Program-made: the position numbers and the translations under genes | Assembly: GCA_002269645.1 (NCBI GenBank) | Contig: NIVC01000840.1 | Span: 1 to 37,871 of the forward strand | DNA: 37,871 nucleotides | DNA from: Macrostomum lignano | Taxonomy: Eukaryota | Direction of reading: 5' to 3' | Part shown: piece by piece, positions 5,983 to 29,680 of the stretch | Numbering within the stretch: position 1 is the stretch's first letter | Layout: each line of letters opens with the position of its first letter | Notes under the pieces: generated by a model | The model's input: the letters and a program-made list of their open reading frames with translations, nothing else | Told to the model about the DNA's origin: nothing | Databases searched by the model: none

Positions 5983-8064
5983 ATGCCGAATAACAGCAAA
6001 GAAACTGCTGATAAACTGGTGAATATTGAAGCAAATTTTGCTTGCTGGCAGCCGGCACTTGTTCTGGCATGCGTTGCTTTCATTTGCTCAACCGCAGTGG
6101 CCTCCTACTCGGTGTCCGTTTACATTAACAATCCGATTTTCGGTAGATCACCAGACGAACCGGTAAGATCTGTCACTTACCTGGGTAATAAATCAGATTT
6201 CTATAAGTGAAAATTTTCATCACAGTGAAAACAATTCATTCTAAACCATCATACTTTCGATAGGTCAGCATGCACTTTGTTTTGGATAAGCAAAAATTGA
6301 AGACTTGTGCGCGTTCGGGACTTCGTGTGAAGTATACCGACTTGCCGTGCATGAGATCGGACACTGAGTATTACACTATTGGTGAGGGGATGGGACTGGC
6401 TGCCCCACTTTTGTCTGGTGTGGATATGGTGGCTGTCTTAGAGGGGCTGTTTTAAGCGGGCTGTGGGACTGTGTTTAAGGGGGGTGCTGTAAAGGGGGGC
6501 TGTTTTAAGGGGGCTGTTTTAATGGGGCTGTTTTAATGGGGCTATTTTAATGGGGCTGTTTTAAAGGGGGCTGTTTTAATGGGGCTGTTTTAATGGGGCT
6601 GTTTTAATGGGTTGCTGTTTTAATGGGGCTCTTTTAATGGGGCTGTTTTAATGGGGGCTGTTTTAATGGGGCTGTTTTAATGGGGGGCTGTTTTAATGGG
6701 GCTGTTTTAAAGGGGGGCTGTTTTAATGGGGCTGTTTTAATGGGGCTGTTTTAATGGGGCTGTTTTAATGGGGGGCTGTTTTAATGGGGCTGTTTTAAAG
6801 GGGGGCTGTTTTAATGGGGCTTTTTTAATGGGGGCTGTTTTAATGGGGCTGTTTTAATGGGGCTGTTTTAATGGGGGCTGTTTTAATGGGGCTGTTTTAA
6901 TGGGGCTGTTTTAATGGGGCTGTTTTAATAGGGCTGTTTTAATGGGGCTGTTTTAATGGGGCTGTTTTAATGGGGTGCTGTTTTAATGGGGCTGTTTTAA
7001 TGGGGCTGTTTTAATGGGGCTGTTTTAATGGGGCTGTTTTAATGGGGCTGTTTTAATGGGGCTGTTTTAATGGGGCTGTTTTAATGGGGCTGTTTTAATG
7101 GGGGCTGTTTTAATGGGGCTGTTTTAATGGGGCTGTTTTAATGGGGCTGTTTTAAAGGGGGGCTGTTTTAATGGGGCTGTTTTAAGGGGATGTTTTAATG
7201 GGGCTGTTTTAAAGGGGGGCTGTTTTAATGGGGCTGTTTTAAGGGATGTTTTAAGGGGGCTGTTTTAAAGGGCGGCTGTTTTAGTGGGACTGTGTTTAAG
7301 GGGGGTGCTGTAAAGGGGGGGCTATTCTAGGAGGCTGTCTTAGAGGGGTTGCTTTAGGGGTGGTGTTTAGGGGGTGGTGTTTTAGGGGGGGGGACTTTCT
7401 TAGGGGGACTCACCATAAAACACGACATCATTAAACGCCAAACAGACGGATGCCTCGGACCCGTAGTCTGCCGAGACGAGTGCCAGTCGGACTCATCGCG
7501 CACAGTCGGCTGCCGTTGCCATGACAATGCCGGAGGTTTTAACTTGACCGGAAATTCGGGCAGCGTCGGATTAAATATGGGAGGTGTTTATCTGATTTAT
7601 GCCCAGGTAAGTGAGTTATCGATTTCTCAGTCAGTGGAATCCTGACCCCAGAGGAACCCCAGTCAGGGGAATCCCAGTCAGGGAAATCCCAGGCAGGGGA
7701 ATCTCAGTCGGGGGAATCCCACTCCGGGGAATTCCAGTTAGGAGAATCCCAGTCAAGAGCATTCCAGTCAGTGGAACGTTAATGTTGAACGTTGAACTTG
7801 GCAAATGATTTATCCCCAAACCAGGTCAGCTTTCGAGATTCCGAGTCCAGCCCAGTTGCCGTGTCGCTGCAGGTGAACGGCAAGCACACTTCGGCCCAGT
7901 GTCATCAGGCGAACTCGATGTCCAACGGCTCATACTGCGTCATCAATAGTCAAAGACGATTCAAAGTAGGCGATCGAGTGGCCGTGCACTCACCTGAGGC
8001 CTTCAGAGTTGTCAACGCAGATAGCGCAGTCACGTTCTGGGGACTGGTGCGCCTGTCTGACTGA
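5983..8064 (+). CDS. TNF-superfamily ligand (EDA/eiger/BAFF-like, EF-disulfide type), type II membrane protein, ~246 aa; join(5983..6162,6264..6381,7404..7606,7825..8064)
   Basis: All introns GT-AG with matching phases (0,1,0): ccg|gtaaga, ttcgatag|gtc, attg|gtgagg, ctttcttag|gg (alternative in-phase acceptor at 7445), cag|gtaagt, aaaccag|gtc. Exon 1 has a hydrophobic signal-anchor (ALVLACVAFICSTAVASYSV). Splicing creates the TNF signature GVYLIYAQ|VSF; C-terminus has KVGDRVAV and TFWGLVRL; strand A PVSMHF; Cys pair in AQC and SYC. Confidence 0.85.
6495..7285. repeat. 14-bp minisatellite (ggggctgttttaat), ~55 copies, inside intron 2 of the TNF ligand
   Basis: Directly visible; lies between donor 6382 and acceptor 7403. 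Confidence 0.97.
7651..7765. repeat. Degenerate 15-bp tandem array (agtcaGGGGAATCCC-like), 8 units, inside intron 3 of the TNF ligand; units match the NF-kB consensus
   Basis: 10-mers start at 7651, 7666, 7681, 7696, 7711, 7726, 7741, 7756; four match GGGRNWYYCC exactly. The repeat is seen; regulatory function is not shown. Confidence 0.8.
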
Positions 8065-8789
8065 CATCCTTAACAAGCGTACAAATTATTTTTGATAGCC
8101 TAGCTAGCTTGTCGCTCGAACATGAACTTTTAACGGACATGTAAATCATAGTTTTTTAGTTTGTCATTTAATGTATTTTTCTCATATAGGATTGCCATGT
8201 TTATAAAGAATAAGGTTAACCAAAGAAACTTGTACATAACTGATAAGTATTAAGTTTTTAGCTGATGCAGAAACTGCAAGAAATGACCTCGAATTCACCT
8301 GTGTAAAAGAGGATATGATATGAAAACAGAAAACGTCAATATGCCAATACTGTCTGTATGCAGGCACACACTCACACACGCTCATACAGGGTGTACAAGA
8401 TTGGACGTCACCATTCTTCATGAAACGCCACATGCCATCGAACTGCTACACTTTGTCTATCTGGATATATCGACATTATATTATATAGTATAGCTCGTAC
8501 ACAAGCTGTTGAAACCCGCGGATTTTGAACCCGGGGAATTCCAATCCCCGGAACTACTTTTGCATGTATTCTGAAATCTAAGGCCATACACAAACAAAAA
8601 CTTGTTAATAGTTAGTAGGATAGAGGTAGACATAAAATGGAGCACATTCGTGTAAAATTAGGGTTTGAGGCAAACGTTGATATTGTTGGCTGGGGTACTC
8701 CGCAGAATGCCAGGAAATGTCTGTCTGACTCTAAAACATGTGTTGGCAAACTCTGGCCTCTCCCTGACTCTCCCTATGTCCCTTGTATC

Positions 8790-9261
8790 CTTTAAAATTT
8801 CTATCGTCTCTTCTGTTTCCTTTCTTCTCTCTCGTCCCTCGTCTCTCCTCTCTCCTCTCTCTTCTCTCCTCTCTTCTCTCGTATCTTCCTTCATCTCTCT
8901 TCTCTTTCATCTCTCTTATTTCATCTCTTCCCTATTCTTTTCTCTCTCCACTCCTCTCTCCTTTCTACTTTTCGTTTTCTCTCTGCTCTCCTCTCTCCTC
9001 TCTACTTTTTCGTTTTCTCTCTCCTCTCCTCTCTCCCCCTCTTCTCTCGTCTCTTCCTTCTCCTCTCTATTCTTTTCTCTTATCTCTTAACTCTCTCCTC
9101 TACTCTCTCATCTCTCCTCTCTACTCTTTCCTTTCTCTCTCCTCTCTCCCCTTTTCTCTCGTCTCTTTCCTCACCTCTCTTCTCTCTCGTCTGCTCTTTC
9201 ATTTCTCCTTTCTCTTCCTTTATCTTTTCTCTCTTATCTCTTCTCGTTTCTCTCTGCTCTG

Positions 9262-9337
<76 letters not shown>

Positions 9338-10165
9338 TCTCTCCCATCTCTTTTCTCCTCTCTACTCTCTCCCCTCTTCATTCTCCTATTTCCTCTTCTC
9401 TCTCCCTGTCTCTCCTCTCTCCTCTAGTCTCTGTAATCTCTTCTCTCTTATCTTTCCTCTGTTCTCTCTACTCCCATCTCTCGTCTGTTCATTTGCTCTC
9501 TCATCTGTCATCTTTACTCTCTTATACGTTCTCTCACTTATCTCCTCTGTACTCGTCCCTTTCACCTCTTCTGACTCCTTTTTTCTTTACTCCTCTCTTC
9601 TTTTCTCTTCCCTCTTCTATACTCTCTCTCCTCTATTATCTTCTCTCGTCTCTCTGCACTCTCCTCTCACCTTTTTCATCTCTCATCTTTACTCTCTCAT
9701 CTCTCCTTTCATCTGTCTCATCTCTTTCCTCTCTCCTCCTCTTCCCTTTACTCTCTCATCTCTCCTTTCTCCCCTCTTCTTACACCCCTCTCTTATCACT
9801 ATCTCTTCTCTTCTCACTCCTCTCCCCCCATCTTATCTCCTCTCTTCTCTATCCTTTCTACTCTCTCCTTTCTAATCTCTCCACTCCTCTTGACCCTCTG
9901 TCATCTTCTTTCTGCTCTCTCATCTCTACTCTCTTTTCACTCTTCTCTACTCTCCTCTCATCGATCCTCTGTCTCATCTCTCCCCTCTTCTAACCTTACT
10001 CTTTCCTCTCCCTCCTTTCTCCCCTCTTCTCGCTTCTTCCTCCCTTCTTCTCTGCTCTCTCCTCACCACTTGTCTCTCCTCTTATATTCCATGTTTTCTC
10101 ATATCCCCCTCTCGCCTCTCCTCTCTTCTAATAGTCTATTCCTTCTCCTTTCCACTCTCATCTGG
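8790..10165. repeat. ~1.4-kb CT-rich low-complexity polypyrimidine tract including a pure (CT)n run at ~9268-9330
   Basis: Directly visible; source of the Leu/Ser/Phe-only ORFs. Confidence 0.97.
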
Positions 10166-11249
10166 CCTGAACATAAGCTGGATTCTTTATCTGGCTTCTG
10201 AAGTAAAAATCTACCCATTCCTGCTTGGAAAGCCAGTTTGTGGGACGTAGTAGTACTCTCATTTCTGTTCTCATGCTTTGATCACGTCATCTTTCTTGCC
10301 AATTTGCAGTCCTGAAAGGAATTTGTGTATTTTCAGCTCCACTGCAGTCTGCATCAGTCTAACAACCAAGGAAATACGCATTTCTTAGGAGGACATTTAA
10401 AATTTAAGGTACTTTTAAGAGAAACTTAAAATTTCCATGGTGTGCCTAATTTAGTAGGGTTGTATTGCATTGCATCACCTTTTCATAAATCTTTCGCTTT
10501 CACAAACCATGCCAGATTGCCTTGATTTGCCAATTGCCATCCACTGTTAAACTGCTGCAGAGTTTGCCAATACAGAGGTGAGGGCAGTGGTTAGAATTTC
10601 TCACTAAACTGTTGTGGCTAAACGTAGCCTCCACGGAGGTGCAAAGAAGGATATAAAGAAAGCTATTCCAAAACACTGTACATTTGTTATGTACATTCAG
10701 TCCTATCGCCTGACCCTTGGTCTGGCTCTGGGGGAATGAGTGAGTGAGTGAGTGGCACAAACAACAGAAAAAGCAGACAAACTTCACATGCTTACAGTTT
10801 CTGCTCTGAATGAGTTACAGAGTTGTAACTTTACATTTAGACAGAGAATGAGTCAATGAAGAATTTTGTCAAGATCAAAGTCAATCGCTTCACGTGGAGC
10901 AAACTTATGGCAGCCGAAAGTTAGTCAATTTTTAAACCCCTTTTACACATCTGGGCCCAGATCGGGAAAGAGAGGCAGGCGGACGGAGGTTGGGGTGGCT
11001 GTCTCGCTGAAAAAACAGCCTAACTTTAAAAGTGCACAGCGCCGTTCAAAATTGAGTTTGAGACTTGAAATAGTACACGATTGTGCCAAAATAGTTGAAG
11101 ATTGTCTGTGTCAAATTTGAAGAGAATCGGTAGAAGTGGAGCGGCGCTACGAAGGATTAAGTAAAAAAACGCGCATTTTGAGCAGTTTTTTGCACTTTTA
11201 GGTAGGAAGACTCAAATTTAAGAAATGTAAAAGTAGCCTAAGACATTCT

Positions 11250-11540: not shown

Positions 11541-12012
11541 AAACGCTAGTGTTATTTTTTTAAATGAACCAATTATCTAACTCAGACAGAAGAGAAAAAC
11601 AGACAATAATCAAGACAATTTTAATACAGCAGGCTTGAGTGGAACAATGAAGTATTCAGAAGTGTCTGGCCGAGTCTTGAGCACAGAATAAATATAGGCA
11701 GAAAAGTAGAACTTCCCTTTTATTTGTCTAAACAAACTATTTAGACAGAGTTTCTTATGAATAAACACTGACTCATACTTATAGAGGTCAACTTAGAAAT
11801 TTAATCTCAAGCTCAGTGCAGTGTGCGCAGCACTGTACAGAGTGAGTTACACGTACATGTATTTTGAGTGGGCAATTCGAAAAGCTTGAAGTCAAAGAAG
11901 TAGAATTTTTACATGTGACAGTGAGATTGCAGCTATAGAAACAACTCAAAAAATGTCCTGTCTGAGCTTAGCTGATTTTTATAAAAATTTCAGTTTTGAG
12001 GGTAAAAATCTT

Positions 12013-12607
12013 GCTTGTGGCGCTAAAATCTTATTTGTGGCGCTAAAATCTTGTTTGTGGCGCTAAAATCTGGCTTGTGGCGCTAAGTCTTGCTACTGGC
12101 GCTAAAATCTTGATTGTGGCGCTAAGTCTTGGTAGTGGCGCTCAAATCTTGATTGTGGCGCTGAAATCTTGTCTGTGGCGCTAAAATCTCAGTTGCGGCG
12201 CTAAAATATTGATTGTGGCGCTAAAATAATGTCTGCGGCGCTAAAATCTTGGTTGCGGCGCTAAAATCTTAGTTGTGGCGCTAGAATCTGGCTTGTGGCG
12301 CTAAGTCTTGCTAGTGGCGCTAAAATCTTGATTGTGGCGCTAAAATCTCAGTTGCGGCGCTAAAATCTTGATTGTGGCGCTAAAATAATGTCTGTGGCGC
12401 TAAAATCTTGCTTTTTGCGCTAAAATCTTGCTTGTAGCGCTAAAATCTTGCTAGTGGCGCTAAAATCTTGCTTGTGGCGCTAAAATCTTGCTTGTGGCGC
12501 TAAAATCTTGCTTGTGGCGCTAAAATCTTGCTTGTGGCGCTAAAATCTTGCTTGTGACGCTAAAATCTTGCTTGTGGCGCTAAAATCTTAGTTGGGGCGC
12601 TAAAATC
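12013..12607. repeat. 20-bp minisatellite (gtggcgctaaaatcttgctt), ~29 copies
   Basis: Directly visible; most homogeneous toward the 3' end. Confidence 0.96.
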
Positions 12608-12796
12608 TGTAGCTTTAAAGTCTTGTAACACTAAAGTTAAAGTTTCCAACAAAGATTTACTCGAATTATCCTACTAAGCAGTCATACTGCAGACTACTTT
12701 AAGTAGCTATAACAGACGTACAAAGTTTTGGCCAATTTAGTGTTGCCAAAATCATTTCGAGACAAAAGCTTTGCTGATAAGTGCCAATTTTAATCC

Positions 12797-13100
12797 CACT
12801 GTATATAGCAGTGTCAGTTTTGGCGCCACTGCATATGGAAGTGTCAGTTTTGGCGCCACTGTATATGGAAGTGTCAGTTTTGGCGCCACTGTATATGGAA
12901 GTGTCAGTTTTGGCGCCACTGTATATGGAAGTGTCAGTTTTGGCGCCACTGTATATGGAAGTGTCAGTTTTGGCGCCACTGTATATGGAAGTGTCAGTTT
13001 TGGCGCCACTGTATATGGGAGTGTCAGTTTTAGGACCACTGTATATGGGAGTGTCAGTTTTGGCGCCACTGTATATGGGAGTGTCAGTTTTGGCGCCACT
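12797..13100. repeat. 30-bp minisatellite (gtgtcagttttggcgccactgtatatggaa), ~10 copies
   Basis: Units start at 12811, 12841 ... 13081; explains the APKLTLPYTV-type ORFs. Confidence 0.97.
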
Positions 13101-13645
13101 GGGAGTGTGAATTTTGCGTCATTAGAGTGTCAGTTTTGGCGCCACTGGGAGTGTGAATTTTGCGTCATTGGAGTGTCAGTTTTGGAGCCACTGGGAGTGT
13201 GAATTTTGCGTCATTGGAGTGTCAGTTTTGGCGCCACTGGGAGTGTGAATTTTGCGTCATTGGAGTGTCAGTTTTGGCGCCACTGGAAATGTGAATTTTG
13301 CGTCATTGGAGTGTCAGTTTTGGCGCCACTGGGAGTGTGAATTTTGCGTCATTGGAGTGTCAGTTTTGGCGCCACTGGGAGTGTGAATTTTGCGTCATTG
13401 GAGTGTCAGTTTTGGCGCCACTGGGAGTGTGAATTTTGCGTCATTGGAGTGTCAGTTTTGGCGCCACTGGAAGTGTGAATTTTGCGTCATTGGAGTGTCA
13501 GTTTTGGCGCCACTGGGAGTGTGAATTTTGCGTCATTGGAGTGTCAGTTTTGGCGCCACTGGGAGTGTGAATTTTGCGTCATTGGAGTGTCAGTTTTGGC
13601 GCCACTGGGAGTGTGAATTTTGCGTCATTGGAGTGTCAGTTTCAG
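13081..13645. repeat. 46-bp minisatellite (gtgtcagttttggcgccactgggagtgtgaattttgcgtcattgga), ~12 copies
   Basis: Period 46 (tggcgcc at 13321 and 13367); shares its first 21 bp with the adjacent 30-bp unit. Confidence 0.97.
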
Positions 13646-14262
13646 CGCTACTGTACGGGAGTGTAAAAATTTTAACGCTGCTAGAGGAACTGTCAATTTT
13701 GGCGCAGCATGAAGCGTCAGTTCCGGCGCCATTGAGAGTCGCAACTAAATGGTGCCATCTTAGCTCCGACATTGGCACCATGTCAGTATGTGTTGTCAGT
13801 TATGGCGCTACAGTTTTCATTGAAATTACAGCATTACAGAATGCATTAAAAGAGTAAAACCACAGGCGATCAGCTCTCTCTGTATACCGGCATATGACTG
13901 AGCTCATGTCAATGCACTCGCTACAATCTGGCAAGTCGCAGACAAAGCTAATGAAATTCTCGTAACACTGTCCAATCAGCGAAATTTGATAGAAAAGGGG
14001 AACTTTGGCTGTGTGCGCAGGGAACAAGGTTCTAAATAATAAGCACAGGTTAAAGGTGCGTACTTTCCGCTGGATAGAGGGTTGGGGTTGAGGCGAGAAG
14101 GTAAGAAAATGAGTGGGCGTTGAGCATGCCACTAAAGCAGTTGAAATAAAAGTTAAAAGCACAGAAAAGCAGACTATAATATGGAACCAACGCAAACGCT
14201 TAAAGAGCAGCTATAGTTTTTTAAAAAGTAAACTAAGAAACGAGTCTTACTTGAGCAGTTGC

Positions 14263-17200
14263 ATGACAACTAGCGGAATGTCTAATCCTATTTCATCCCA
14301 AAGGTCCTCTGTAGAAGACGATTCGCCAAATCAGCAGGAGCTTTCAACAGTCCCTAAAACTCCAGAGAAGACTGAGGAAGACCCAAGCGAACAAGCTCCA
14401 TTAAACGGGAAGCCTCGGAATCAGGAGCAGCAAGAGAACATTAAACTGGCAACAAGCCAACAATGCAACTGTAAAAGTATCTTCTATATGATTTGCGCAC
14501 TGCTTGGGATTGCGCTTTTAGCTGCCATCCTCTACAAGCTCTGTCAAGAAACTGACGACAAGATTTCTACAACACCTGCGCCAAACTTTGTCAGCGCCAT
14601 GAGCCGAATAAGTCCAGCAGCAGCAGGCATCACCACAGCTGCGACTGGATCGAAGATTTCCTCTACTCGTAGCACAACTGTAAGACTCGTTATACTTTTT
14701 AACTACTTTAAGTAACAATAACAATAGAAAAGCGTGTATAATGCGCATTTCAGCGGCCAACAATCTACTTCTCGATGGTCCTTGATCCTAAACGAATTGG
14801 CGTTTGCTCGGACAATAAAGAAACCAACTGCAGGCATGGCAAAAGACCAACTTTTATACTGCCGGGCGCCAATGGCCGTGAGTAATGGTTTCTGTGAGTA
14901 TGGCTCAAGCTTGGTAGCATAGGTTTTTTGTCTCCTTTTCGCCCTTTTTCTCAAAGGTCTACTCTAACTATCCATAACTAATCTTCGTTCCTGAAAAGTC
15001 CAAAAAAATCCCCGTGAAACGAAAAAATCGCACTTTGAAAATGATGAAAAATAACAAATATCAATAAATTAATCGCTTGCATATAAGTGATATAACAAAG
15101 GTTTTTAGCGTTTCTTGAGTCAGTTTTTTAAAAAGAGATTTTGGGTTTTTTGTTATTTTTCAAACAGTGTAGTTATAAATACTATTTTAGCTTTGAAAGT
15201 TTGTACTTTATTTTACTTGCTTAAAAATGTGATTTTTCGACATCCTCCATTTTCATACGCTCGTATTTGGTATGTGCTGGTGGAAAAGTCATGGGATTTT
15301 TAACGATTTTTCTCTAGCAGTAATACATAAATTATAGCGGACTTTTGAACAACGTAGAGCGACCGAAAGTGCATTACCCTTAGTATTTTTATTACACCTG
15401 CCCCAATGGGTAGATGCGCAACCGACAGCTCAGCCGCAGTTATTGCGCGGCGCATCTGAAGGCTGCGTACGGCTGTTCAGTCCAAGGACTGGGGGGTCGC
15501 CACACACCCTCAATTACCTCAGCTAATGCTGGCACCCATTTTACAGCTGGGTGAACTGAAGCAATGCAGAGTGAAGTGTCTTTTGCTCAACTTGCTCAAT
15601 TAGGAAAAATTGTTCCGAGTGAGTCTTTAGTCTTGCTCTAACTACTAGGCAACAACCCTCACTCTGGACCCCGTTTTGAGTTTCAGCATACCAATCGACT
15701 ACGCCAAACTGTTATTGTACTTTCAGATGCACAGAACCTGGGACCATTCACTTGCAAAGTAAACCATCAATGCGAGCAAGTGCAGACAATCGGCAATGAG
15801 TTTGTTTTTAAACGCCCCGGAAGAGTCAAGATCAGTGCCCAGGTGAGACGCTGTACACCTAAGTATGTTCCAAGCATATTATTACAACCAAATGACAACC
15901 AAAAATGACAACCAACAAATATAAATATAAACCTTTGAATGAAAATTCGTTATAGAATAAACAGAACCTGTATTAGGCCACTGCTAGCTACAGATGTCAC
16001 TCGCAAAGATGCGTTCATCAACTCTTTTTTAGTAGCTAAAGTTGCATTTCTGTCTTTCTGCAAGCGAAATAAAATAATTTACATTTTACGTTTTTGAAGC
16101 TTCAAAAAACAATAAGAAATTTGAGGTAGAAAATTTCATGAAAACTTGATAACGGCCTAAACCATTGCGTCTGCATAGCGAGCAAGAGAGAAAAGGGGTG
16201 GTGCCCCCAGCCCCCAGCCAGGCCGATAAATAGTTTGGCTTTCCTCTTGCCCGCTTGTGTCTGACTGTGACGACTCTCCTTACTGCTCTCTCATTGGTTG
16301 AGCTAGATTGGGCCTGCCCCCTAGGCTGGGTTTCGTCCGGTCTGACTTTGGACCCTCTCTCTCTCTTTACTGCTCTCTCATTGGCTGAGCTAGATTGGGC
16401 CTGCCCCCCTAGGCTGGGTTTCGTCTGGTCTGACTTTGACCCTAGCTCTCTCTCCTTACTACTCTCTCATTGGCTGAGCTAGATTGGGCCTGCCCCCCTA
16501 TGCTGGGTTTCGTCCGGTCTGACTTTGTCCCTCTCTCTTTACTGCTCTCTTATTGGTTGAGCTACATGTAGATTGGGCCTGCTCCCCCCTAGGCTGAGTT
16601 CTGTCTGTCGTACGTTCACTTGTGTACATCGAGTTCAATTCTTGTTGGTCCATCTTTAACCCCATATGCTCCCTGAGGCCGCAAACCCCGAGGAAGGAAA
16701 ATAAATTTTAACTGCCATATTAGATTTAAGTGACACTGCGCAGACTAACTACTGAAAAAAGAGTAGACGCTCAACTTTCTTCCAACTTTAATCGCAAGTG
16801 ACACACCCTGTGTTATTCGAGTACCTGTGCTCACTGCAAAACAATTACACCCGAAAGCAGAAAGAAACAAAATACTGATTTACCGATGAAAACCCGCCAA
16901 GACTAGACTCAATCAATGAAAGATGTCTATCAACTCACCAGTGATAAACTGACCAATTATTCCATGTAAGTAGTATAGCGCGCCAGGATTGCTAACAAAC
17001 AACTCATTTCTTGTATTTACTCCCTTCGAGACACACACTTACTCATTTTGAGCTCTGCAGTACGACTTTAACGAAGGGAGTACGAGAAATGAGAGGGGCT
17101 TCGACAAAGAAGTTCTAGCGCTTGTTGTATATACGACTCCATGGACAACCAAAGTAGAATTCTTAATTCTTAGTCTACACTCGAAAATCATGCAAATTAC

Positions 17201-17531
17201 GATAGGAAGTTTTTGAATGGTAACCCTCCGACCCTCATTTAAACTCATTAATTGCCACCCACGAACTATACAGGTGTCATTGGAAAGCGCCAACACAGGT
17301 CAGCAAGTCACCCTGGACTTGAGGCTCAATAGAAGCAGAATTGAGAAAAGAGTGTTCGATAAACTTCACCCAGGCAGCAAAGTTACTCTGCCGATTCACT
17401 CTGAGCGTATAAAATTGTCAGCAAACAGCACCATCGCTCTGAGATTGACTCTTGAATCTGGATTACCCGTGGAACTGCTCTACGCAATTGCTGACACAGA
17501 CGTCAGCTTCGAACTGTTACTGGACAACTGA
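14263..17531 (+). CDS. Divergent TNF-like type II membrane protein, ~326 aa; join(14263..14679,14728..14877,15687..15842,17274..17531)
   Basis: All introns GT-AG phase 0: act|gtaaga, acaatag|aaa, gcc|gtgagt, gagtttcag|cat, cag|gtgaga, ctatacag|gtg. Exon 1: acidic cytoplasmic region, TM (IFYMICALLGIALLAAILY), Ser/Thr stalk. Strand-A-like YNAHF; GRVKISAQ|VSL has the same intron position as GVYLIYAQ|VSF in the first gene; LGPFTC vs LGPVVC; IHSERIKLSANSTIAL vs INSQRRFKVGDRVAV. A likely 5'UTR intron lies at 14101..14258. Confidence 0.7.
15395..15655 (-). mobile_element. tRNA-derived CORE-type (MIR-related) SINE remnant in intron 2 of the second TNF-like gene
   Basis: cccattttacagctgggtgaactgaagcaatgcagagtgaagtgtcttttgctcaa (15535-15590) closely resembles the reverse complement of the MIR/CORE domain as recalled (cccattttacagatgaggaaactgaggcacagagaggttaagtaacttgcccaa); A-box-like head (minus strand gcctagtagttagagc) at ~15635-15650; B box not evident. 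Confidence 0.65.
16270..16600. repeat. ~83-89-bp tandem repeat, ~4 copies, in intron 3 of the second TNF-like gene
   Basis: cattgg(t/c)tgagctagattgggcctgcccc recurs at ~16292, 16379, 16468, 16551. Confidence 0.9.
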
Positions 17532-17609
17532 ACAATGTTGGCAATACCATTAATACTCGTGATTGATAATGGCTGTTTTTCAATGCGGTATAAGGGCGAT
17601 CTGCAAGAT

Positions 17610-17980
17610 AAGGGCTGATTCTTCAATGGGGCAGAGGGGTATAATTCTCAAGCTGATAATGGGGGTGACGGGTGATTCTTTAATGGGGGTGAAGGGCGAT
17701 TCTTTAATGGGGGTGAAGGCGATCCTTTAATTGAGTGAAGGGTGATTCTTTAATTAAGTGAAGGGCGATTCTTTAAATCAGTCAGAGGCGATTCTTTAAT
17801 TGAGTGAAGGGCGATTCTTTAAATCAGTGAAAGGCGATTCTTAAATTGAGTGAAAGGCGATTCTTTCATTGAGTGAAGGGCGATCCTTTAATTGAGTGAA
17901 AGGCGATTCTTTAATTGAGTGAAGGGCGATTCTTAATTTGAGTGAAAGGCGATTCTTTAATTGGGGTAAAGAGCGATTCA
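17610..17980. repeat. Degenerate ~23-bp minisatellite (gagtgaagggcgattctttaatt), ~15 copies, just 3' of the second TNF-like stop codon
   Basis: Directly visible; possibly within the 3'UTR if AATAAA at 18076-18081 is used. Confidence 0.9.
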
Positions 17981-18396
17981 AAAGCTTCAAAAGCGCGCAA
18001 TGACGACATTACGAGACATTTTTTTAAATTTAAAGTACCAAAGCAATTAACATCCCGCACCCACAAAGACGTTACAATAAAGTAATACATAAGCAAATCA
18101 TGAATGAATTTTTTATTGACCATCAATCAATATATTGCAGTTTAAATTGAAAAATATTCTTTTAAACATTTTTTCACTTTTTATTTATTTCCTTCACTTT
18201 CACCACTGAAAGTAGCATACACTGACTATTGAAAAATTAAATTGACTGATCAGGGTAAAAAAGTAACTATAAATATTTGAATTGAGTTTTGAACAAGCGG
18301 CCATAAGAAACAAATTACAAGCTAAAAATAGGCAATTGATGTGACCTAACTATAAAATCAGCATGCACAATTAAAAATTCAACGACAACGAAAGTT

Positions 18397-19085
18397 TGGC
18401 TGGCATAGCAACTGAGGATCTGGGAGGCTGGCATAGCAACTGAGGATCTGGGAGGCTGGCCCAGAAACTGAGGATCTGGGAGGCTGGCCCAGAAACTGAG
18501 GATCTGGGAGGCTGGCCCAGCAACTGAGGATCTGGGAGGCTGGCCCAGAAACTGAGGATCTGGGAGGCTGGCCCAGAAACTGAGGATCTGGGAGGCTGGC
18601 CCAGAAACTGAGGATCTGGGAAGCTGGAAAAGCAACTGAGGATCTGGGAGGCTGGCCCAGCAACTGAGGATCTGGGAAGCTGGCCCAGAAACTGAGGATC
18701 TGGGAGGCTGGTCCAGCAACTGAGGATCTGGGAAGCTGGAAAAGCAACTGAGGATCTGGGAGGCTGGCCCAGCAACTGAGGATCTGGGAAGCTGGTCCAG
18801 CAACTGAGGATCTGGGAGGCTGGAAAAGCAACTGAGGATCTGGGAGGCTGGCCCAGCAACTGAGGATCTGGGACTCTGGCCCAGCAACTGAGGGTCTGGG
18901 AAGCTGGTCCAGCAACTGAGGATCTGGGAAGCTGGAAAAGCAACTGAGGATCTGGGAGGCTGGCCCAGCAACTGAGGATCTGGGACTCTGGCCCAGCAAC
19001 TGAGGGTCTGGGAAGCTGGTCCAGCAACTGAGGATCTGGGACTGGGAGGCTGGCAAAGCAACTGAGGGTCTGGAAGGCTGGCCCA
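18397..19085. repeat. 28-bp minisatellite (gcaactgaggatctgggaggctggccca), ~24 copies
   Basis: Period 28 (aggctgg at 18481 and 18509); explains three overlapping minus-strand repeat ORFs. Confidence 0.97.
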
Positions 19086-19159
19086 GTGATCGGGGAGAAC
19101 GCCAGTTTCCCTATCTTAGGATAAATAATTAACAGTAATAGAAAACATTAGTTTGTTTT

Positions 19160-19165
19160 TTTATT
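19160..19165 (-). promoter_or_regulatory. Candidate polyadenylation signal (AATAAA) of the first Ig-TM gene
   Basis: tttatt on the plus strand ~100 nt past the stop codon. Confidence 0.45.
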
Positions 19166-19265
19166 GATATTATAGAATGGCAAAACGACTGTGAAGAATC
19201 AAATGAATGGAGAGTTTAGTTTCTCATTGCCAAGACATCCGTGAGCGATGGTCAAGGTCAGGTCG

Positions 19266-20036
19266 TCAGTCATCCGCCGCTGACGGTTTCGGCAGGGTGC
19301 TGTGGTGCCGATGCGACTTCAGGCCGCTTAGAGATGTCGATAAAGCTTCCTCATTGTCATCGACATCGTCGGCTGCTGCTCCGGCGGTGGCGGCGGCGCC
19401 GGTTGAAGCTCCGGCGCTCTCAGAGACTGCCCGACTTGGCTGGCGACTGTGCCGAATCTGCTGGTGGGGCTGCTGTTGCCTGCCAGCTGCTGCAGAGAAC
19501 TTGCCAGCAGAAGCATCCGGTGCAGTGCTGATGCTGGTACGCCGTGACAGCAGCAGAGAATGCAAGCCCAGCGCCAGGAATATGAACAACAGTACACCAT
19601 CCACGGCGTACACTACAGCAATCTGTGTCAGATAAGACGGCATGTTGTACACCTGCAGAGTAGTGCTAGCGTTGTACCGCCGATCAGGCACTGAGCAGAC
19701 ATAATCTCCTGAGTCCTCAACAGCCAGGTGAATAGCCGACATGGTGCCATTCACTGCACTGATATTAGCATGGGACCAGGCCCAATTATCAATCTGGCTG
19801 CCATTGGGAAAGTACCAGGCCAGCTCAGCAACGGAGTAATTAGTGGCCAGTTCCGGTGACAGATGACAGCTAACTGTGGTGTTGCTACCCACTAATAGGG
19901 ACTGCTGGTACGGTTCGGCAGCCAGAGGCGGAGTCTCTTCATCTGGCTCGCTGGCAACTGTCTGCTGAGGCGTTGAAAATAGCAGCAACAGGAAAAGCAG
20001 GAACACTGAATTGCTTTGGAGCATCGTTGTGGACAT
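19266..20036 (-). CDS. Single-Ig-domain (I-set-like) type I membrane protein, 256 aa, Asp in the TM helix, low-complexity Tyr-free tail
   Basis: Signal peptide (VFLLFLLLLFSTPQQTVA); Ig core VSC...LAWYFPNG...EDSGDYVC; TM IAVVYAVDGVLLFIFLALGL; six N-glycosylation sequons; uninterrupted ORF. Confidence 0.92.
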   Translation of the reverse strand: MSTTMLQSNSVFLLFLLLLFSTPQQTVASEPDEETPPLAAEPYQQSLLVGSNTTVSCHLSPELATNYSVAELAWYFPNGSQIDNWAWSHANISAVNGTMSAIHLAVEDSGDYVCSVPDRRYNASTTLQVYNMPSYLTQIAVVYAVDGVLLFIFLALGLHSLLLSRRTSISTAPDASAGKFSAAAGRQQQPHQQIRHSRQPSRAVSESAGASTGAAATAGAAADDVDDNEEALSTSLSGLKSHRHHSTLPKPSAADD

Positions 20037-20082
20037 GAATGAAAAAAGTTAAAGGTACTTTCAAAATGTCTAATGACACAAT

Positions 20083-21133
20083 CTACCATTGTCTAAATCT
20101 AATAGCATGATACACAATCTATCATTGTGCAAACCCAATAGCACGATACACAATCTATCATTGTGCAAACCAAATAGCATGATACACAATCTATCATTGT
20201 GCAAACCCAATAGCACGATACACAATCTATCATTGTGCAAACCAAATAGCATGATACACAAACTACCATTGTGCAAACCAAATAGCATGATACACAATCT
20301 ATCATTGTGCAAACCCAATAGCACGATACACAATCTATCATTGTGCAAACCAAATAGCATGATACACAAACTACCATTGTGCAAACCAAATAGCATGATA
20401 CACAAACTACCATTGTGCAAACCAAATAGCATGATACACAATCTACCATTGTGCAAACCCAATAGCATGATACATAATCTACCATTGGCTAAACCCAATA
20501 GCATGATACACAATCTACCATTGTCTAAACCTAATAGCATGATACATAATCTACCATTGTGCAAACCAAATAGCATGATACACAATCTACCATTGTCTAA
20601 ATTCAATAGCATGATTCACAATCTACCATTGTGCAAACCCAATAGCATGATACAAAATCTACCATTGTGCAAACCCAATAGCATGATACACAATCTACCA
20701 TTGTCTAAACCCAATAGCATGATACACAATCTACTATTGGCAAAACCCAATAGCATGATACACAATCTACCATTGTCTAAACCTAATAGCATGATACATA
20801 ATCTACCATTGTGCAAACCAAATAGCATGATACACAATCTACCATTGTGCAAACCAAATAGCATGATACACAATCTATCATTGTGCAAACCCAATAGCAT
20901 GATACATAATCTACCATTGTGCAAATTAAATAGCATGATACACAATCTACCATTGTGCAAACCCAATAGCATGATACATAATCTACCATTGGCTAAACTC
21001 AATAGCATGATACACAATCTACCATTGTACAAACCCAATAGCATGATACATAATCTACCATTGGCTAAACCCAATAGCATGATACACAATCTACCATTGT
21101 GCAAACCCAATAGCACGATACAATCTACCATTG
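20083..21133. repeat. 36-bp minisatellite (aatagcatgatacacaatctaccattgtgcaaaccc), ~29 copies, immediately 5' of the first Ig-TM gene (probably in a 5'UTR intron)
   Basis: Directly visible; explains the NSMIHNLPLCKP repeat ORF. Candidate minus-strand donor (gtaagc) at ~21242 and acceptor at ~20058 flank it. Confidence 0.97.
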
Positions 21134-21859: not shown

Positions 21860-22640
21860 GGTGTGAGGAGAGATCAGATGAGTGTGAGGAGAGATCAGGG
21901 GAGTGTGAGGAGGGATCAGGAAGTGTGAGAAGAGATCAATGCGTGTGAGGAGAGATCAGGGAGAGTGAGGAGAGATCAGGGAGGGTGGGGAGAGATCAGG
22001 GAGAGTGAGGAGAGATCAGGGAGAGTGAGAAGAGATCAGGGAGGGTGGGGAGAGATCAGGGAGAGTGAGAAGAGATCAGGGAGGGTGGGGAGAGATCAGG
22101 GAGGGTGAGGAGAGATCAGGGAGAGTGAGGAGAGATCAGGGAGAGTGAGGAGAGATCGGGGAGAGTGAGAAGAGATCAGGGAGGGTGGGGAGAGATCAGG
22201 GAGAGTGAGGAGAGATCAGGGAGTGTGAGGAGAGATCAGGAGGGTGGGGAGAGATCAGGAAGAGTGAGGAGAGATCAGGGAGGGTGGGGAGAGATCAGGG
22301 AGAGTGAGGAGAGATCAGGAGGGTGGGGAGAGATCAGGGAGAGTGAGGAGAGATCAGGGAGAGTGAGGAGAGATCGGGGAGAGTGAGAAGAGATCAGGGA
22401 GGGTGGGGAGAGATCAGGGAGAGTGAGGAGAGATCAGGGAGGGTGGGGAGAGATCAGGGAGGGTGAGGAGAGATCAGGGAGAGTGAGGAGAGATCACGGA
22501 GGGTGGGGAGAGATCAGGGAGGGTGAGGAGAGATCAGGGAGGGTGGGGAGAGATCAGGGAGTGTGAGGAGAGATCAGGGAATGTGAGGAGAGATCAGGGA
22601 GTGTGAGGAGAGATCAATGAGGGTGAGGAGAGATCAGGGT
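21860..22640. repeat. Purine-rich ~20-bp minisatellite (gagagtgaggagagatcagg / gagggtggggagagatcagg), ~38 copies
   Basis: Directly visible, two interspersed variants. Confidence 0.96.
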
Positions 22641-23049
22641 GAGATAGATAGGTGTGTGAAAGCCGAGCTGAGATACGCTTTAATCAGAGTTATTAGGGTG
22701 GCAAATGAAGCAAATAAAGTGAGTGCCTGTAAAGTAAATTGTCGTCATGAGAGCTCTTACGACAAAAATTTCCACATCCTTTATACGCTCGTAATCGCAT
22801 TAATTCTACTTTTTATCCAAAAAGAAATCGCTTAATTGGGGTCCACTTAGCTCGAAAATCTTCAAACATGATGCTTTCATCTCAGAAAATGAACCACTTT
22901 TAGGACAGAATTATTACCAAATAGATTGGTATTAGAGGGGCCGATTTAGAAAAATCTTCAAACATAATACTTTCACTTGCTACTTAATTAATCTATCAAT
23001 GAACTACTTTCAGGACAGAATTTTCATTGTCGTATGATAAAAACTCACT

Positions 23050-23850
23050 TAGACTCTAAAGTGAGTCATGCCCAAAATCCGTTAGTGTCTATATGGCATG
23101 CGAGGAGTTTAGGAAAAGCATAGTCGAAGCATGAAGCCCGACAAGACGCATTCTCAATTTTACAAGGCTACTCGCCTAAAACTCGGTGACTCAGCCACCA
23201 AAGTCCACCAAGATCTGGTAGATGCTTGGGGCGATGCTTTTCCATCCTTGAGAACCATACAGCGCTGGATGAAAGACGTCAATGACGGGACGCGGGAAGT
23301 GCTCGGCGATGGTGACCGACCTGGCCGGTCAAGGAGCTCAAGGACAGATGAGCTGGCGATGAAGGTTAAGGAGATGGTCTGCGAGAATCCCCACCTCTCG
23401 TCCCGTGATCTAGTTGACCTCTGGCGAACCGGAAACCTGTAACGTACTCTGAGCAAGATCAGCCTGCAAAAACGGACAATGCTCGACCGCATGTTGCAGG
23501 ACTCTTTAGGGATTTCCCCTGCAAGAGCGCTCTGTCACCGCGATTTGGAAGAGCCCTACAGTCCCGATCTGAACCTGTGTGACCGATTTCTGTTCCTCTA
23601 GCTAAAGAACGCACTCCGCGGCATGACCTTCAACAACTGTCAAGAGGTTGAAGAGGCCTCATTGCAGGTGTTGCGGAACATCTCTGAAAGTGCCCTCCGA
23701 GACCAGGTGGATGTGCCCCTGGACCACTACCAGCGCGTGATTGCAGTCAATGGACACTACGTTACTGATTAGAGTTAAAATGTTTCACGTTTTTACCTGT
23801 TTGCTTGCCTAGAGGTACTAACGACAAGACTTTTGTTCCACCTGGAGTAC
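23050..23850 (+). mobile_element. Degraded, internally deleted mariner (DD34D-type) element
   Basis: 23131-23442 encodes a mariner N-terminal HTH (FPSLRTIQRWMK...DRPGRSR); downstream frames give DNARPHVA and PYSPDLNLCD motifs and a C-terminus ending VNGHYVTD* (23772), with frameshifts and an in-frame stop; first catalytic Asp region is missing. TIRs only weakly recognisable. Confidence 0.88.
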
Positions 23851-25847: not shown

Positions 25848-26726
25848 GAACTGGTTCTGTTCCTTGGGTCATGGCTTCCATAACTGGTTCTGTTCCTTGG
25901 GTCATGGCTTCCAAAACCGGTTCTGTTTCTTGGGTCATGGCTTCCATAACTGGTTCTGTTCTTTGGGTCATGGCTTCCAAAACTGGTTCTGTTCTTTGAG
26001 TCATGGCTTCCATAACTGGTTCTGTTCTTTGGGTCATGGCTTCCATAACTGGTTCTGTTCCTTGGGTCATGGCTTCCAAAACTGGTTCTGTTCTTTGAGC
26101 CATGGCTTCCATAACTGGTTCTGATCCTTGGGTCATGGCTTCCAAAACTGGTTCTGTTCTTTGGGTCATGGCTTCCAAAACTGGTTCTGTTCTTTGGGTC
26201 ATGGCTTCCATAACTGGTTCTGTTCCTTGGGTCATGGATTCCAAAACCGGTTCTGTTCTTTGGGTCATGGCTTCCAAAACTGGTTCTGTTCTTTAAGTCA
26301 TGGCTTCCATAACTGGTTCTGTTCTTTGGGTCATGGCTTCCAAAACTGGTTCTGTTCTTTGAGTCATGGCTTCCAAAACTGGTTCTGTTCTTTGAGTCAT
26401 CATGCCTTCCAAAACTGGTTCTGTTCCTTGAGTCATCATGCCTTCCAAACCGGTTCTGTTCTTTGAGTCATCATATGCCTTCCAAAACTGGTTCTGTTCC
26501 TTGAGTCATCATGGCTTCCAAAACTGGTTCTGTTTTTTGAGTCATCATGGCTTCCAAAACTGGTTCTGTTCTTTGAGTCATCATGGCTTCCAAAACTGGT
26601 TCTGTTCTTTGAGTCATCATGGCTTTCAAAACTGGTTCTGTTCTTTGAGTCATCATGGCTTTCAAAACTGGTTCTGTTATTTGAGTCATGGCTTGCAAAA
26701 CCGGTTTTGTTCTTTGAGTCATGGCT
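25848..26726. repeat. 33-bp minisatellite (aactggttctgttctttgggtcatggcttccaa) changing to 36-bp units by CAT insertion, ~26 copies
   Basis: Directly visible; explains the EAMTQRTEPVL-type ORFs. Confidence 0.97.
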
Positions 26727-26886
26727 TCCGAAACGCGTCAAGATTCACGAACTCTCGCAGAAAAGCACTAGCCTTAATTAGACCAAAACAGCACATTGAA
26801 GCGACCCGGTATTTTTATGCAGAAAAATTGGATTAGAATCAAGTAAAAAGCTAATGAAAGCTGAACCAACCAACCAGAGACAGAGT

Positions 26887-26892
26887 TTTATT
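26887..26892 (-). promoter_or_regulatory. Candidate polyadenylation signal (AATAAA) of the second Ig-TM gene
   Basis: tttatt on the plus strand ~90 nt past the stop codon. Confidence 0.45.
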
Positions 26893-26979
26893 TAACAGCA
26901 GAACTGAATCATGGTAAAAAATTAACCATTGATTGCACTAGAAAAAAGCAGAATAAATTCCAATAGAAAAAACTTGCAA

Positions 26980-27489
26980 TCAAACTGCGCGACTAGATTG
27001 TCTAAAAGAGCCCAACAGAGACATAACGCATAACACGCCAGCCAAAATCGTTAGAGCACCATCAATAGAGTACACAATCGTTAAAACTGACGTATAAGAC
27101 GGCATTTTATAAATGACAACATTAACCGAAGCGGTCATGTTACACGAATTCAGACGGCACTGATAGTAACCACTGTCACCTTCCGTAGCCTTTAAACAGT
27201 TTAATTTACCATCGTTTGATTGAAACCGGCCTCTCAAAGACAAGCCAGTAATCATAGTGCCATTAGGCGAGTACCATTCCAACGAGCTACTATTAAACTT
27301 GCTGACGCAATCGCCCACAGCAACAGGCTTTGGCAAACGACAAGAGATTGTGAAGCTGCGACCAATTTCGGCTGAGGTTTGATTGAGCGATAAAATTAAA
27401 TAACTGGCAGCATGAACTGTCTGCTGGCCGAATACTAATATCGACAGAATTAGTGCACTCGCAATCGTTTTGTAAGCTGTGTAAGTCAT
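26980..27489 (-). CDS. Single-Ig-domain type I membrane protein, 169 aa, paralogue of 19266-20036, Asp in the TM helix, ~7-aa tail
   Basis: Signal peptide (IASALILSILVFGQQTVHA); Ig core ISC...LEWYSPNG...GDSGYYQC; TM VLTIVYSIDGALTILAGVLCVMSLL; four sequons; strong minus-strand acceptor (tcttttttcag at ~27524-27534) shortly upstream of the ATG indicates a 5'UTR intron or trans-splice site. Confidence 0.92.
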   Translation of the reverse strand: MTYTAYKTIASALILSILVFGQQTVHAASYLILSLNQTSAEIGRSFTISCRLPKPVAVGDCVSKFNSSSLEWYSPNGTMITGLSLRGRFQSNDGKLNCLKATEGDSGYYQCRLNSCNMTASVNVVIYKMPSYTSVLTIVYSIDGALTILAGVLCVMSLLGSFRQSSRAV

Positions 27490-29347
27490 TTGTTTGACTG
27501 TCTATAAGACTTAAATACACTTGCTGAAAAAAGACAAGTAAATGAAACAAATAGAAATTTTGTTACAGGCTGCAGTTTTTAATACTTAAAAGCTGGGATA
27601 TTCACATATATGTAATAATTAACGATATTCTAGCTATTACTGTGATAAACAACTTTGTGTCGTCACTTTATAAGAAGTTTAAATAAAGAAGTACCACCTG
27701 TTCCGATTTTGCAAATTCGATTCTTGGAAAAGAGACGCGTGTAACCTACAACTTTACGATGTAACCTGTATCAAACATACTCTAAAAAGTCCACAAAAGC
27801 TGAAAGGTAGCCATATTGCAATTTCAATTCACCGTACCTACTTAAATACTCGCCAAAGTACAGTTACCCAGGACTAATTTTTCCTATTTTTAGCTCGTGG
27901 CTGCTTTCAATAGCTGATTTGATAGGAGCCACTAGCAACATATCGACTTGAGCAGAGCATCAGTGCCCCAAGTGAGCCCAACGCTGGAAAGACACAAGTG
28001 GCAACTTATCTGACACTAATCTCGCCTCGCACTGACTATCGAACAGAATGCCTGGAGCAATTCAGACACATGCCAATTAAAAAATGCATTAACTGCAGAC
28101 ATTCTCTCATTTCACCCTTGACAGTTAATACAGACAGTGGAAAACTTGTCGACTAATGAAACACAGCTTAGTCCGATAGAGAACCGTTACAAGCCATTAA
28201 AGGCGATTTCCTATAGGTATGAACGATTAATTTGCACTCCGAACCCAATACGTTAACACCAAATTCACACAGGGATAGCTAGTAATATATGCCATGCGAA
28301 AGCGAATATACGAGTGTAAATAGATTATTAAATGCATAACCAGACTGTCAAGGTAAATAACCCAGAACTAATCCTAGTTTATTCAATTTGACATACGCTG
28401 TGATCCTAAGCTGATAATCTAGCAAGTCATTGACAGTACGGGATGGATAATCCTATCTCATAAGAAATCAAATCAAACGACAATGCATTTTTAAAAATCT
28501 TCCTGACCAAGCCGCTTAAATACATTTCGACTGTTAAGCCTATAAGAATAACTTCGTGCTAGATTGAGATTATGCCCCTTTCGTGTGCCTGCAGCTCTAA
28601 GCAGTTTTAAATTCTAAACATATTTAAAAAAACATTTGCTGGTAAGACAAGGTTTAATGAGTGGCATCGCATAACAATTCAGTCATACGAGCGTATGAGC
28701 AGGTTGCTATGTAACAAATTATCGTCGAAAAATACACGATATCATGATAAAATATTCGCCTGCTGTAGCTTACATAGCTATGCACGACTGCTCACCCTCT
28801 GCCTACCCCCGTGGAGCTCGTATGCTTTCTGCAGTTCAGTCATGAGACAACGACTGATGCAGAATTGCACAAAGTTCTCAACGCCCGGTTTTCCCTTTCA
28901 CTTTCACACAGCTAAAAATAAAGCAATTACTAATTTAACGATTACTAAGCCAAAAAACCCGACACGCCACAAAGAGATTGTAAGCTGTCCACTGACAGAG
29001 ACTCGTGTATTTAATTATCCGCCCACAGATCACCTCGCTTCACACAGAAAAAAAACTTTCTTTCTAGAAGGTTTATACGGGAGAAAAACAAAAACTATGG
29101 GGGGAATATTGACCGAAAGTTCATTTCGTTGTTTTTGCACGGGTCAATGACAATAGAGAGGAAAGAGGAAAAATAACCAACTAAGTTAAGCCCGCACAGA
29201 GGCGTCGTTGGATTGTTCAAATTCAAAGTTAGAGTCGGGACTTCAAAAGTGTCTGTTTTGTATATTTTAAATAGAAACTCTGCTCCCCAATCATTTATCT
29301 TCTATAGTAATTTTCCAACTGATGCGACGTGGGAGAGCTCAAGGCTG

Positions 29348-29680
29348 TTAGTCCAATCCCTTCAGCAGCGAGCCGATGTCAAGATTGTTGATGTCGTGGT
29401 GACGATCCATGGCCTGACCGGCTGGGCGGTAGCCAAGGCGACCCTGCTGCTGTCGCAGCTCCCGCTCTCGCTCCTGACGCTGCATGGACTCCATGAACTG
29501 CTCCCACATAGTCTCAAACTGCTCATCGTTCATCACGGGTCCGGAGGAGCTGCCGCTAGCGCTGCTGCTGGCGCCGCTGCGATGACCGTTGCTGCCAGAT
29601 ACAACGGCGGTAGCTGGCAGAGCAGTAACAGCAGCAGCCAGGGAAATAGCAACCAACAGATAGAAGGTAAAACACTTCAT
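29348..29680 (-). CDS. Small secreted protein / peptide precursor, 110 aa, function unknown
   Basis: Clear signal peptide MKCFTFYLLVAISLAAAVTA|LP; Ser/Gly linker, charged helical segment, amphipathic C-terminus; GC-rich coding-like composition against an AT-rich background. Confidence 0.8.
   Translation of the reverse strand: MKCFTFYLLVAISLAAAVTALPATAVVSGSNGHRSGASSSASGSSSGPVMNDEQFETMWEQFMESMQRQERERELRQQQGRLGYRPAGQAMDRHHDINNLDIGSLLKGLD

Follow-up and report, generated by a model that had tools for sequence, protein, structure and literature searches.

Human major histocompatibility complex (MHC) class III carries the tumour necrosis factor (TNF) ligand genes TNF/LTA/LTB next to NCR3, the gene of a single-immunoglobulin (Ig) membrane protein. 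Does a similar neighbourhood in the free-living flatworm Macrostomum lignano represent a dedicated signalling locus, or have unrelated gene families come to lie side by side? The window analysed here covers the whole of contig NIVC01000840.1 (37,871 bp; M. lignano assembly GCA_002269645.1), on which five genes are found next to each other: a TNF-like pair (genes A and B, plus strand), an Ig pair (Ig1 and Ig2, minus strand) and a small open reading frame (ORF) for a secreted protein (minus strand). A preliminary description of this DNA had proposed a compact cell-surface signalling cluster, possibly undescribed and possibly related to the proto-MHC. We conclude, with a probability of roughly 0.72, that the region consists of two independent local tandem duplications, adjacent by chance, together with one orphan secreted-protein gene, and does not form a dedicated signalling cluster. 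The evidence suggests a direction away from a functional TNF-Ig neighbourhood, and a role independent of TNF is the most likely one for the Ig proteins.

The linkage was read from the Ig side, over 10 kb on each flank of paralogous and foreign Ig loci. The only places at which TNF and Ig genes were seen together are three near-identical, collinear copies of the locus within the assembly, namely the window, NIVC01000479.1 (L001/L005) and NIVC01000307.1 (L006). In unique sequence their identity is 97-100%, for exons as well as introns; the Ig2 genes of the window and of NIVC01000479.1 are separated by 6 nucleotide differences that lead to 5 amino-acid changes. By their identity the three copies appear to be recent homeologues or haplotigs, which presumably reflect a recent genome duplication or the haplotype redundancy of M. 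lignano. At this level of identity their collinearity is therefore uninformative on conservation or selection.

A second Ig pair of M. lignano is located on NIVC01001726.1 (84842-105654; L004), where P0006 (at 7823-8335 of that stretch) and P0010 (at 10001-10813) are adjacent in the same order and strand as Ig1/Ig2, and are adjoined by a WC-rich/WCOB-domain gene. P0010 (270 amino acids (aa)) is Ig1-like and, like Ig1, ends in HRHHSTLPKP after an acidic low-complexity tail, while P0006 (170 aa) is Ig2-like; the short paralogues, Ig2 and P0006, do without such a tail altogether. Identity amounts to 37% between Ig2 and P0006 and to 30% between Ig1 and P0010, the shared tail motif included. The presence of this second long/short pair implies that the tandem duplication of the Ig genes is older than the duplication of the locus. 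Neither a TNF-like exon (hmmsearch on the six-frame translation) nor a homologue of the secreted protein was found within 10 kb on either side of the P0006/P0010 pair.

Outside M. lignano, the Ig gene of Owenia fusiformis (L007, CAIIXF020000004.1:24389772-24410350; gene at 10001-10579) is a lone, intronless gene placed on the opposite strand within an intron of a 2391-aa ICE1-like gene, with a FYVE gene adjoining. No TNF neighbour and no tandem Ig partner was detected within 10 kb of this gene or of two relatives from ENA (L008 and L009, both on long contigs), each of these loci having a single Ig gene. The Ig family is also carried by eleven Schistosoma species (Smp_021220 included), and parasitic flatworms are reported to be without TNF ligands altogether; since schistosomes keep the Ig family despite the reported lack of TNF ligands, the Ig family is not dependent on a TNF ligand. 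The TNF-Ig adjacency, for which the preliminary description had proposed a microsynteny check, is thus not conserved within 10 kb at L004, L007, L008 and L009, and these results, like the persistence of the Ig family in schistosomes, give no support to the interpretation of the region as a signalling cluster, be it dedicated or ancient. The caveat that accompanied that interpretation, i.e. that linkage alone shows no shared pathway, was borne out and has become the key point.

What had been described of the individual genes fared better. All five genes were recovered with the coordinates and orientation proposed for them (reading frames and splice sites were checked; Table 1), and their assignment as TNF-like proteins, single-Ig proteins with a polar transmembrane residue and a secreted protein is correct. 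Each pair is an old duplication, genes A and B being 20-24% identical and Ig1 and Ig2 32% identical (E 1e-17). All five products have a signal or anchor segment and hence enter the secretory pathway, which nevertheless amounts to three independent families only. Secretory and membrane proteins make up a large share of animal proteomes; if this share is taken as 30-40%, an assumption of our own, three families would all be secretory by chance in roughly 3-6% of cases, a figure to be read with the pattern having been picked post hoc.

Table 1. Positions of genes, transposon remnants and repeat arrays in the M. lignano window (numbering of contig NIVC01000840.1).
Feature	Position	Strand	Description
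Gene A	5983..8064	+	Type II membrane TNF-superfamily ligand, 232 aa
Gene A exons	5983-6162, 6264-6381, 7446-7606, 7825-8064	+	Intron phases 0, 1, 0
Gene B	14263..17531	+	Very divergent TNF-like type II membrane protein, 304 aa
Gene B exons	14263-14679, 14754-14877, 15727-15842, 17274-17531	+	Intron phases 0, 1, 0
Ig1	19266..20036	-	Type I membrane protein of 256 aa, without introns; has a signal peptide, a single I-set Ig domain and a transmembrane helix with Asp146
Ig2	26980..27489	-	Type I membrane protein of 169 aa, without introns; has a signal peptide, a single I-set Ig domain and a transmembrane helix with Asp
Small secreted orphan protein	29348..29680	-	110-aa ORF
Mariner/Mos1-type transposase helix-turn-helix remnant	23131..23442	+	Pfam HTH_32 and HTH_48; between Ig1 and Ig2
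Mariner/Mos1-type transposase helix-turn-helix remnant	33336-33548	-	Pfam HTH_48/HTH_32
Mariner/Mos1-type transposase helix-turn-helix remnant	37595-37870	+	Pfam HTH_48/HTH_32
Minisatellite arrays	2454-4352, 6496-7318, 8807-9954, 12005-13653, 18398-19086, 20076-21133, 21863-22643, 25849-26734		

Gene A is a genuine homologue of the TNF-superfamily ligands and has already been published. The final four-exon models of genes A and B were set from the published transcript and homology; in gene A the start ATG is at 5983 and GT/AG is found at every junction. The translation of gene A includes the RNA-seq-corrected M_lignano_0048272 except for the first and last residue of the latter, an entry of the M. 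lignano TNF ligand catalogue (M_lignano_0048272, 0005508 and 0007488; Bertevello et al. 2020, PMC7519573, Additional file 10), and the UniProt entry A0A1I8HE44, named "TNF_2 domain-containing protein", is identical to gene A over the shared region. Gene A matches the Pfam TNF family PF00229 with 23.6 bits (E 5.2e-5), above the cut-off of 23. A single hydrophobic segment at residues 26-44, the signal anchor, precedes a C-terminal TNF homology domain, and a type II topology follows from this arrangement. As in other members of the family, the product of gene A would trimerise via the TNF homology domain. A single NGFR-like, death-domain-bearing TNF receptor has been reported in M. lignano, to which the ligand, either membrane-bound or shed, would signal.

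Gene B corresponds exactly to the NCBI model BOX15_Mlig010472g1, whose only name is "hypothetical protein", and the UniProt entry A0A1I8HQL9 has the same length (304 aa). It gave no match to PF00229 even at E<=10, and it is absent from the published list of TNF ligands (Bertevello 2020, PMC7519573). The locus, considered possibly undescribed in the preliminary description, is so only in part, as gene A has its place in the catalogue and its TNF_2 name in UniProt. Gene B is tied to gene A and to the flatworm TNF family by (i) its gene structure, both genes having four exons with the same intron phases, junctions offset by 0-2 residues and an identically placed junction between AQ and VS; (ii) an hhalign match to an alignment of eight flatworm TNF ligands (probability 86.6%, E 4.5e-6) that spans the HxVxD...C...C...LGPxxC...GxYxIxAQV region; (iii) the retention of the first four (N-terminal) cysteines of the family, of the LGPxxC and AQVS motifs and of the membrane anchor, its sole hydrophobic segment lying at residues 72-90; and (iv) the fold matches of its predicted structure. 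In the AlphaFold2 model, which is of low confidence (predicted local distance difference test (pLDDT) 46.8), the C-terminal half is eight-stranded, and the top PDB matches of this model in Foldseek are 4-1BBL, EDA-A1/A2 and C1q-like (C1QL) proteins, with TM-scores of about 0.46-0.55.

The same gene may be viewed as a decaying or non-functional TNF paralogue, a reading to which the missing Pfam TNF match, the low confidence of the structure prediction and the loss of the two family-invariant cysteines of the last exon (exon 4), of the RR and GD motifs and of the Tyr of GxY would all conform. We regard decay as unlikely, for all three copies of the locus preserve an intact reading frame through the four exons as well as canonical splice sites, the gene is annotated by both NCBI and UniProt, the four N-terminal cysteines and LGPxxC are preserved, and the predicted beta-sandwich, albeit from a low-confidence model, resembles those of TNF ligands. 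Gene B is read as an old tandem copy, a strongly remodelled TNF paralogue that probably acts as a ligand of shifted function or as a modulatory subunit; it could serve as a heterotrimer partner, as a modulator or as a ligand of new specificity. It adds to a known family a new member of unusual divergence and enlarges the flatworm TNF-ligand catalogue by one cryptic, highly divergent paralogue. That catalogue bears on the hypothesis that parasitic flatworms replaced their endogenous ligand by host TNF.

Ig1 is annotated at NCBI, unnamed, from Met5 (252 aa). Its tail is long, acidic and of low complexity (the terminal motif mentioned above falls in the coding region 19266-19330), and the cytoplasmic tail of Ig2 is very short, about 10 residues. 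The transmembrane Asp stands in the context YAVDG in Ig1 and YSIDG in Ig2. Neither protein reaches the Pfam Ig cut-offs as a single sequence. When the Ig1/Ig2 alignment was used for an exhaustive HMMER search, 60 representatives were retrieved at E<=1e-10 and 261 at E<=1e-3; both figures include generic multi-Ig proteins besides the small single-Ig members. Many of the 261 are proteins of 145-270 aa that align from the signal peptide to the transmembrane helix. The family alignment comprises 32 cleanly aligning members (family A6, with Ig1 and Ig2 included), all of which have a signal peptide, one Ig domain with DSGxYxC and a basic tail. The Ig core shows no variation at C50, W72 and C111, and conservation of at least 90% at D105, G107 and Y109; the Ig domain is followed by the juxtamembrane/transmembrane motif VYxMP(S/D/T)YFxEGMIxxxINxxLxVxF. 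The conserved juxtamembrane motif VYxMPSYFxEG and a polar residue in the membrane characterise the family. The polar position in the middle of the transmembrane helix is occupied by Asn in 26 and by Asp in 4 of the 32 members. The "acidic" transmembrane segment ascribed to the pair is thus real in Ig1 and Ig2 as far as the Asp is concerned, but it is not a hallmark of the family, in which the position is mostly Asn; the Asp is a local variant of a conserved intramembrane Asn/polar position.

The Ig family profile finds the I-set domains of DSCAM, titin, contactins, ROBO and NCAM, with top E values between 1e-45 and 1e-37. A confident AlphaFold2 model of Ig2 made with the family alignment (pLDDT 89, predicted template modelling score 0.71) has a beta sandwich at 32-127 and, directly after it, a long helix at 132-168. 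Foldseek matched this model to Ig domains of LRRC4, NCAM and Robo1, and over the Ig domain and the transmembrane helix together it aligns with basigin (of the XKR8 complex) and neuroplastin (of the PMCA complex) in 133 columns (7dce_B and 6a69_B). Comparison of the transmembrane/juxtamembrane consensus with PDB sequences gave chance matches only (ACE2, SERINC) and no link to known Ig-transmembrane subunits. At every locus read (M. lignano, Owenia, L008 and L009) the family member is encoded by one uninterrupted ORF. Ig1 and Ig2 belong to a large, uncharacterised but ordinary-looking family of the immunoglobulin superfamily (IgSF), which was found here in flatworms and one annelid. Long/short pairing of Ig genes was seen in M. 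lignano only.

The mid-membrane Asn/Asp and the rigid MPSYF-EG junction may mediate a specific helix-helix association in the membrane. We propose two options for the partner: a long and a short Ig protein may form a heterodimer, with which the presence of a long/short pair at two loci is consistent, or an Ig protein may dock onto a multi-pass partner, as basigin and neuroplastin do. A reading of the Ig pair as CD3/DAP12-like signalling chains was rejected: no immunoreceptor tyrosine-based activation motif (YxxL/I x6-8 YxxL/I) is present in either protein, the tail of Ig1 being without tyrosine and that of Ig2 being as short as stated above, and the ancestral transmembrane residue is Asn. Ig1 and Ig2 bring out a widespread, unnamed family of small Ig-transmembrane proteins that includes schistosome Smp_021220, tested as a cell-surface antigen, and the conserved intramembrane Asn together with the MPSYF motif suggests a specific membrane partner that is worth identifying.

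Several points weigh against our reading of the region as a chance neighbourhood that includes a remodelled TNF paralogue. Genes B and Ig1 are convergent, with about 1.7 kb between their stop codons (17532-19265), part of which is a 28-bp minisatellite (18398-19086), and this spacing makes overlapping 3' untranslated regions and a shared 3' regulation possible. The linkage comparison covered 10-kb flanks, so a TNF gene may lie farther away at the comparison loci. As the TNF profile derives from flatworm sequences, TNF exons of the annelid type could have escaped it, although the precomputed Pfam matches likewise showed none. Finally, the structural model of gene B is of low confidence, and the inclusion of gene A in its input alignment may have biased the predicted fold.

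These points leave room for a functional, macrostomid-specific module in which the Ig proteins with a transmembrane Asp act as co-receptors, chaperones or regulators (in cis or in trans) of the membrane TNF ligands and in which the adjacency serves co-regulation. Besides the convergence of gene B and Ig1, such a module would account for both families being cell-surface proteins and for the Asn-to-Asp change in the transmembrane helix, found in 3 of the 4 Macrostomum family members and in 1 of the 28 other aligned members (P0024). The arrangement is retained in all three copies of the locus, yet at their near identity this collinearity says nothing in its favour; the older pair P0006/P0010 has no TNF neighbour, although P0006 also has the transmembrane Asp, and the Ig family persists in schistosomes, which are reported to be TNF-less. 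We consider the module decidedly improbable. It is more probable that gene B is an unrecognised, remodelled TNF member and that Ig1 and Ig2 belong to an undescribed intronless Ig-transmembrane family acting as basigin-like auxiliary subunits. Should the neighbourhood nonetheless be functional, it would offer a tractable invertebrate case of TNF-IgSF coupling and a foothold on the origin of MHC class III-like linkage.

It is barely credible that the TNF and Ig genes are neighbours through an ancient linkage shared by descent with the TNF/LTA/LTB-NCR3 neighbourhood of vertebrates: the occurrence of TNF ligands beside single-Ig membrane proteins with a charged transmembrane residue is an analogy only, the contig is without a proto-MHC anchor gene (no ORF or Pfam hit for PSMB, RXR, PBX, NOTCH or BRD across its 37.9 kb), the Ig domain is of the I-set, as in neural adhesion molecules, and not of the V-set type of NCR3, the transmembrane charge is opposite to the basic residue of NCR3 and derives from an uncharged ancestral Asn, the adjacency is missing within 10 kb in Owenia and at the paralogous Ig locus, and the flatworm TNFs are reported to form a lineage-specific group. 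The proto-MHC markers for which the preliminary description had proposed a search of the surroundings are thus not found on the 37.9-kb contig, and the claim of a functional or proto-MHC-like TNF-IgSF locus was left without support in every test run, be it with the paralogous pair, with Owenia and the two further loci, with the schistosomes or with the anchor genes.

The fifth gene of the region had been taken for a secreted peptide precursor. The signal sequence was confirmed, as the 110-aa ORF has a hydrophobic N-terminal signal at residues 3-21; the designation as a precursor was not, since dibasic cleavage sites (KK, KR, RK, RR) are absent from the entire sequence. The signal is followed by a Ser/Gly-rich stretch and then by a charged stretch, which appears helical when judged by eye only. 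No Cys occurs downstream of the signal, no Pfam family was found for the ORF, a search of the neuropeptide literature yielded nothing relevant to it, and no repeated peptides were apparent on reading the sequence, a formal repeat scan not having been run. NCBI models the gene as a 5'-partial product of 87 aa, and its copy on NIVC01000479.1 is 98% identical. The gene is better described as one for a small secreted orphan protein than as one for a peptide precursor.

About a quarter of the contig consists of dense minisatellite arrays, in which units of 14-46 bp are repeated up to 110 times. They fill introns and spacers, among them gene A's first large intron and the spacers that flank Ig1 and Ig2, and the length differences among the three copies of the locus are mostly due to them. 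Three mariner remnants were found, none of which has an intact transposase ORF; the one situated between Ig1 and Ig2 is not a member of the cluster and shows that a transposable element has inserted within it. A Pfam scan of the other long ORFs detected no further genes in the window beyond these three remnants, and there were no Rfam hits. Ig2 and gene A are missing from the NCBI gene calls of the contig, though both reading frames are intact. Exact-sequence database look-ups of the full Ig1 ORF, Ig2 and P0001 returned no match, a word-indexed homology search (gene A, the Ig pair and the TNF alignment) returned self matches only, and a literature search on the Mlig gene identifiers found no papers.

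Among known systems, gene A is like the flatworm TNF ligands (PMC7519573), and also like Eiger, EDA and 4-1BBL, in having a type II anchor and a TNF homology domain, and it carries the flatworm TNF motifs HxVxDxxxxxxC, LGPxxC and GxYxIxxQV. Gene B resembles the flatworm TNF ligands in its anchor and exon structure, in the first four cysteines and in a predicted fold of TNF/C1q-like type, but it differs from them in missing the C-terminal disulfide, the RR/GD motifs and the Pfam TNF match. The TNF/LTA/LTB-NCR3 region is like the window in that TNF ligand genes adjoin the gene of a single-Ig membrane protein; the window differs from it in having no other MHC or proto-MHC marker, another Ig set, the opposite transmembrane charge and a linkage that is not conserved at the loci tested.

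For the Ig proteins the nearest counterparts are Schistosoma mansoni Smp_021220, which has been made as a recombinant "cell surface" antigen, and Owenia fusiformis A0A8J1UYG6 ("Ig-like domain-containing"). Both belong to the family of Ig1 and Ig2 and share with them the signal peptide, one Ig domain, the MPSY motif and the transmembrane helix, the transmembrane residue being Asn in these two proteins versus Asp in Ig1 and Ig2. CD3, CD79 and DAP12-type chains are, like Ig1 and Ig2, small type I proteins with an acidic transmembrane residue and, in CD3 and CD79, one Ig domain; unlike these chains, the Ig1/Ig2 family occurs in animals without lymphocyte receptors. Basigin, neuroplastin and embigin, the Ig-transmembrane auxiliary subunits of MCT transporters, PMCA and XKR8, resemble Ig1 and Ig2 in their membrane-proximal Ig domain and in the transmembrane helix that directly follows it and bears a conserved polar residue in mid-membrane. 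Ig1 and Ig2 differ from them in having a single Ig domain and in the polar residue being Asn/Asp and not Glu, and the resemblance to basigin and neuroplastin indicates a possible mode of working rather than family membership.

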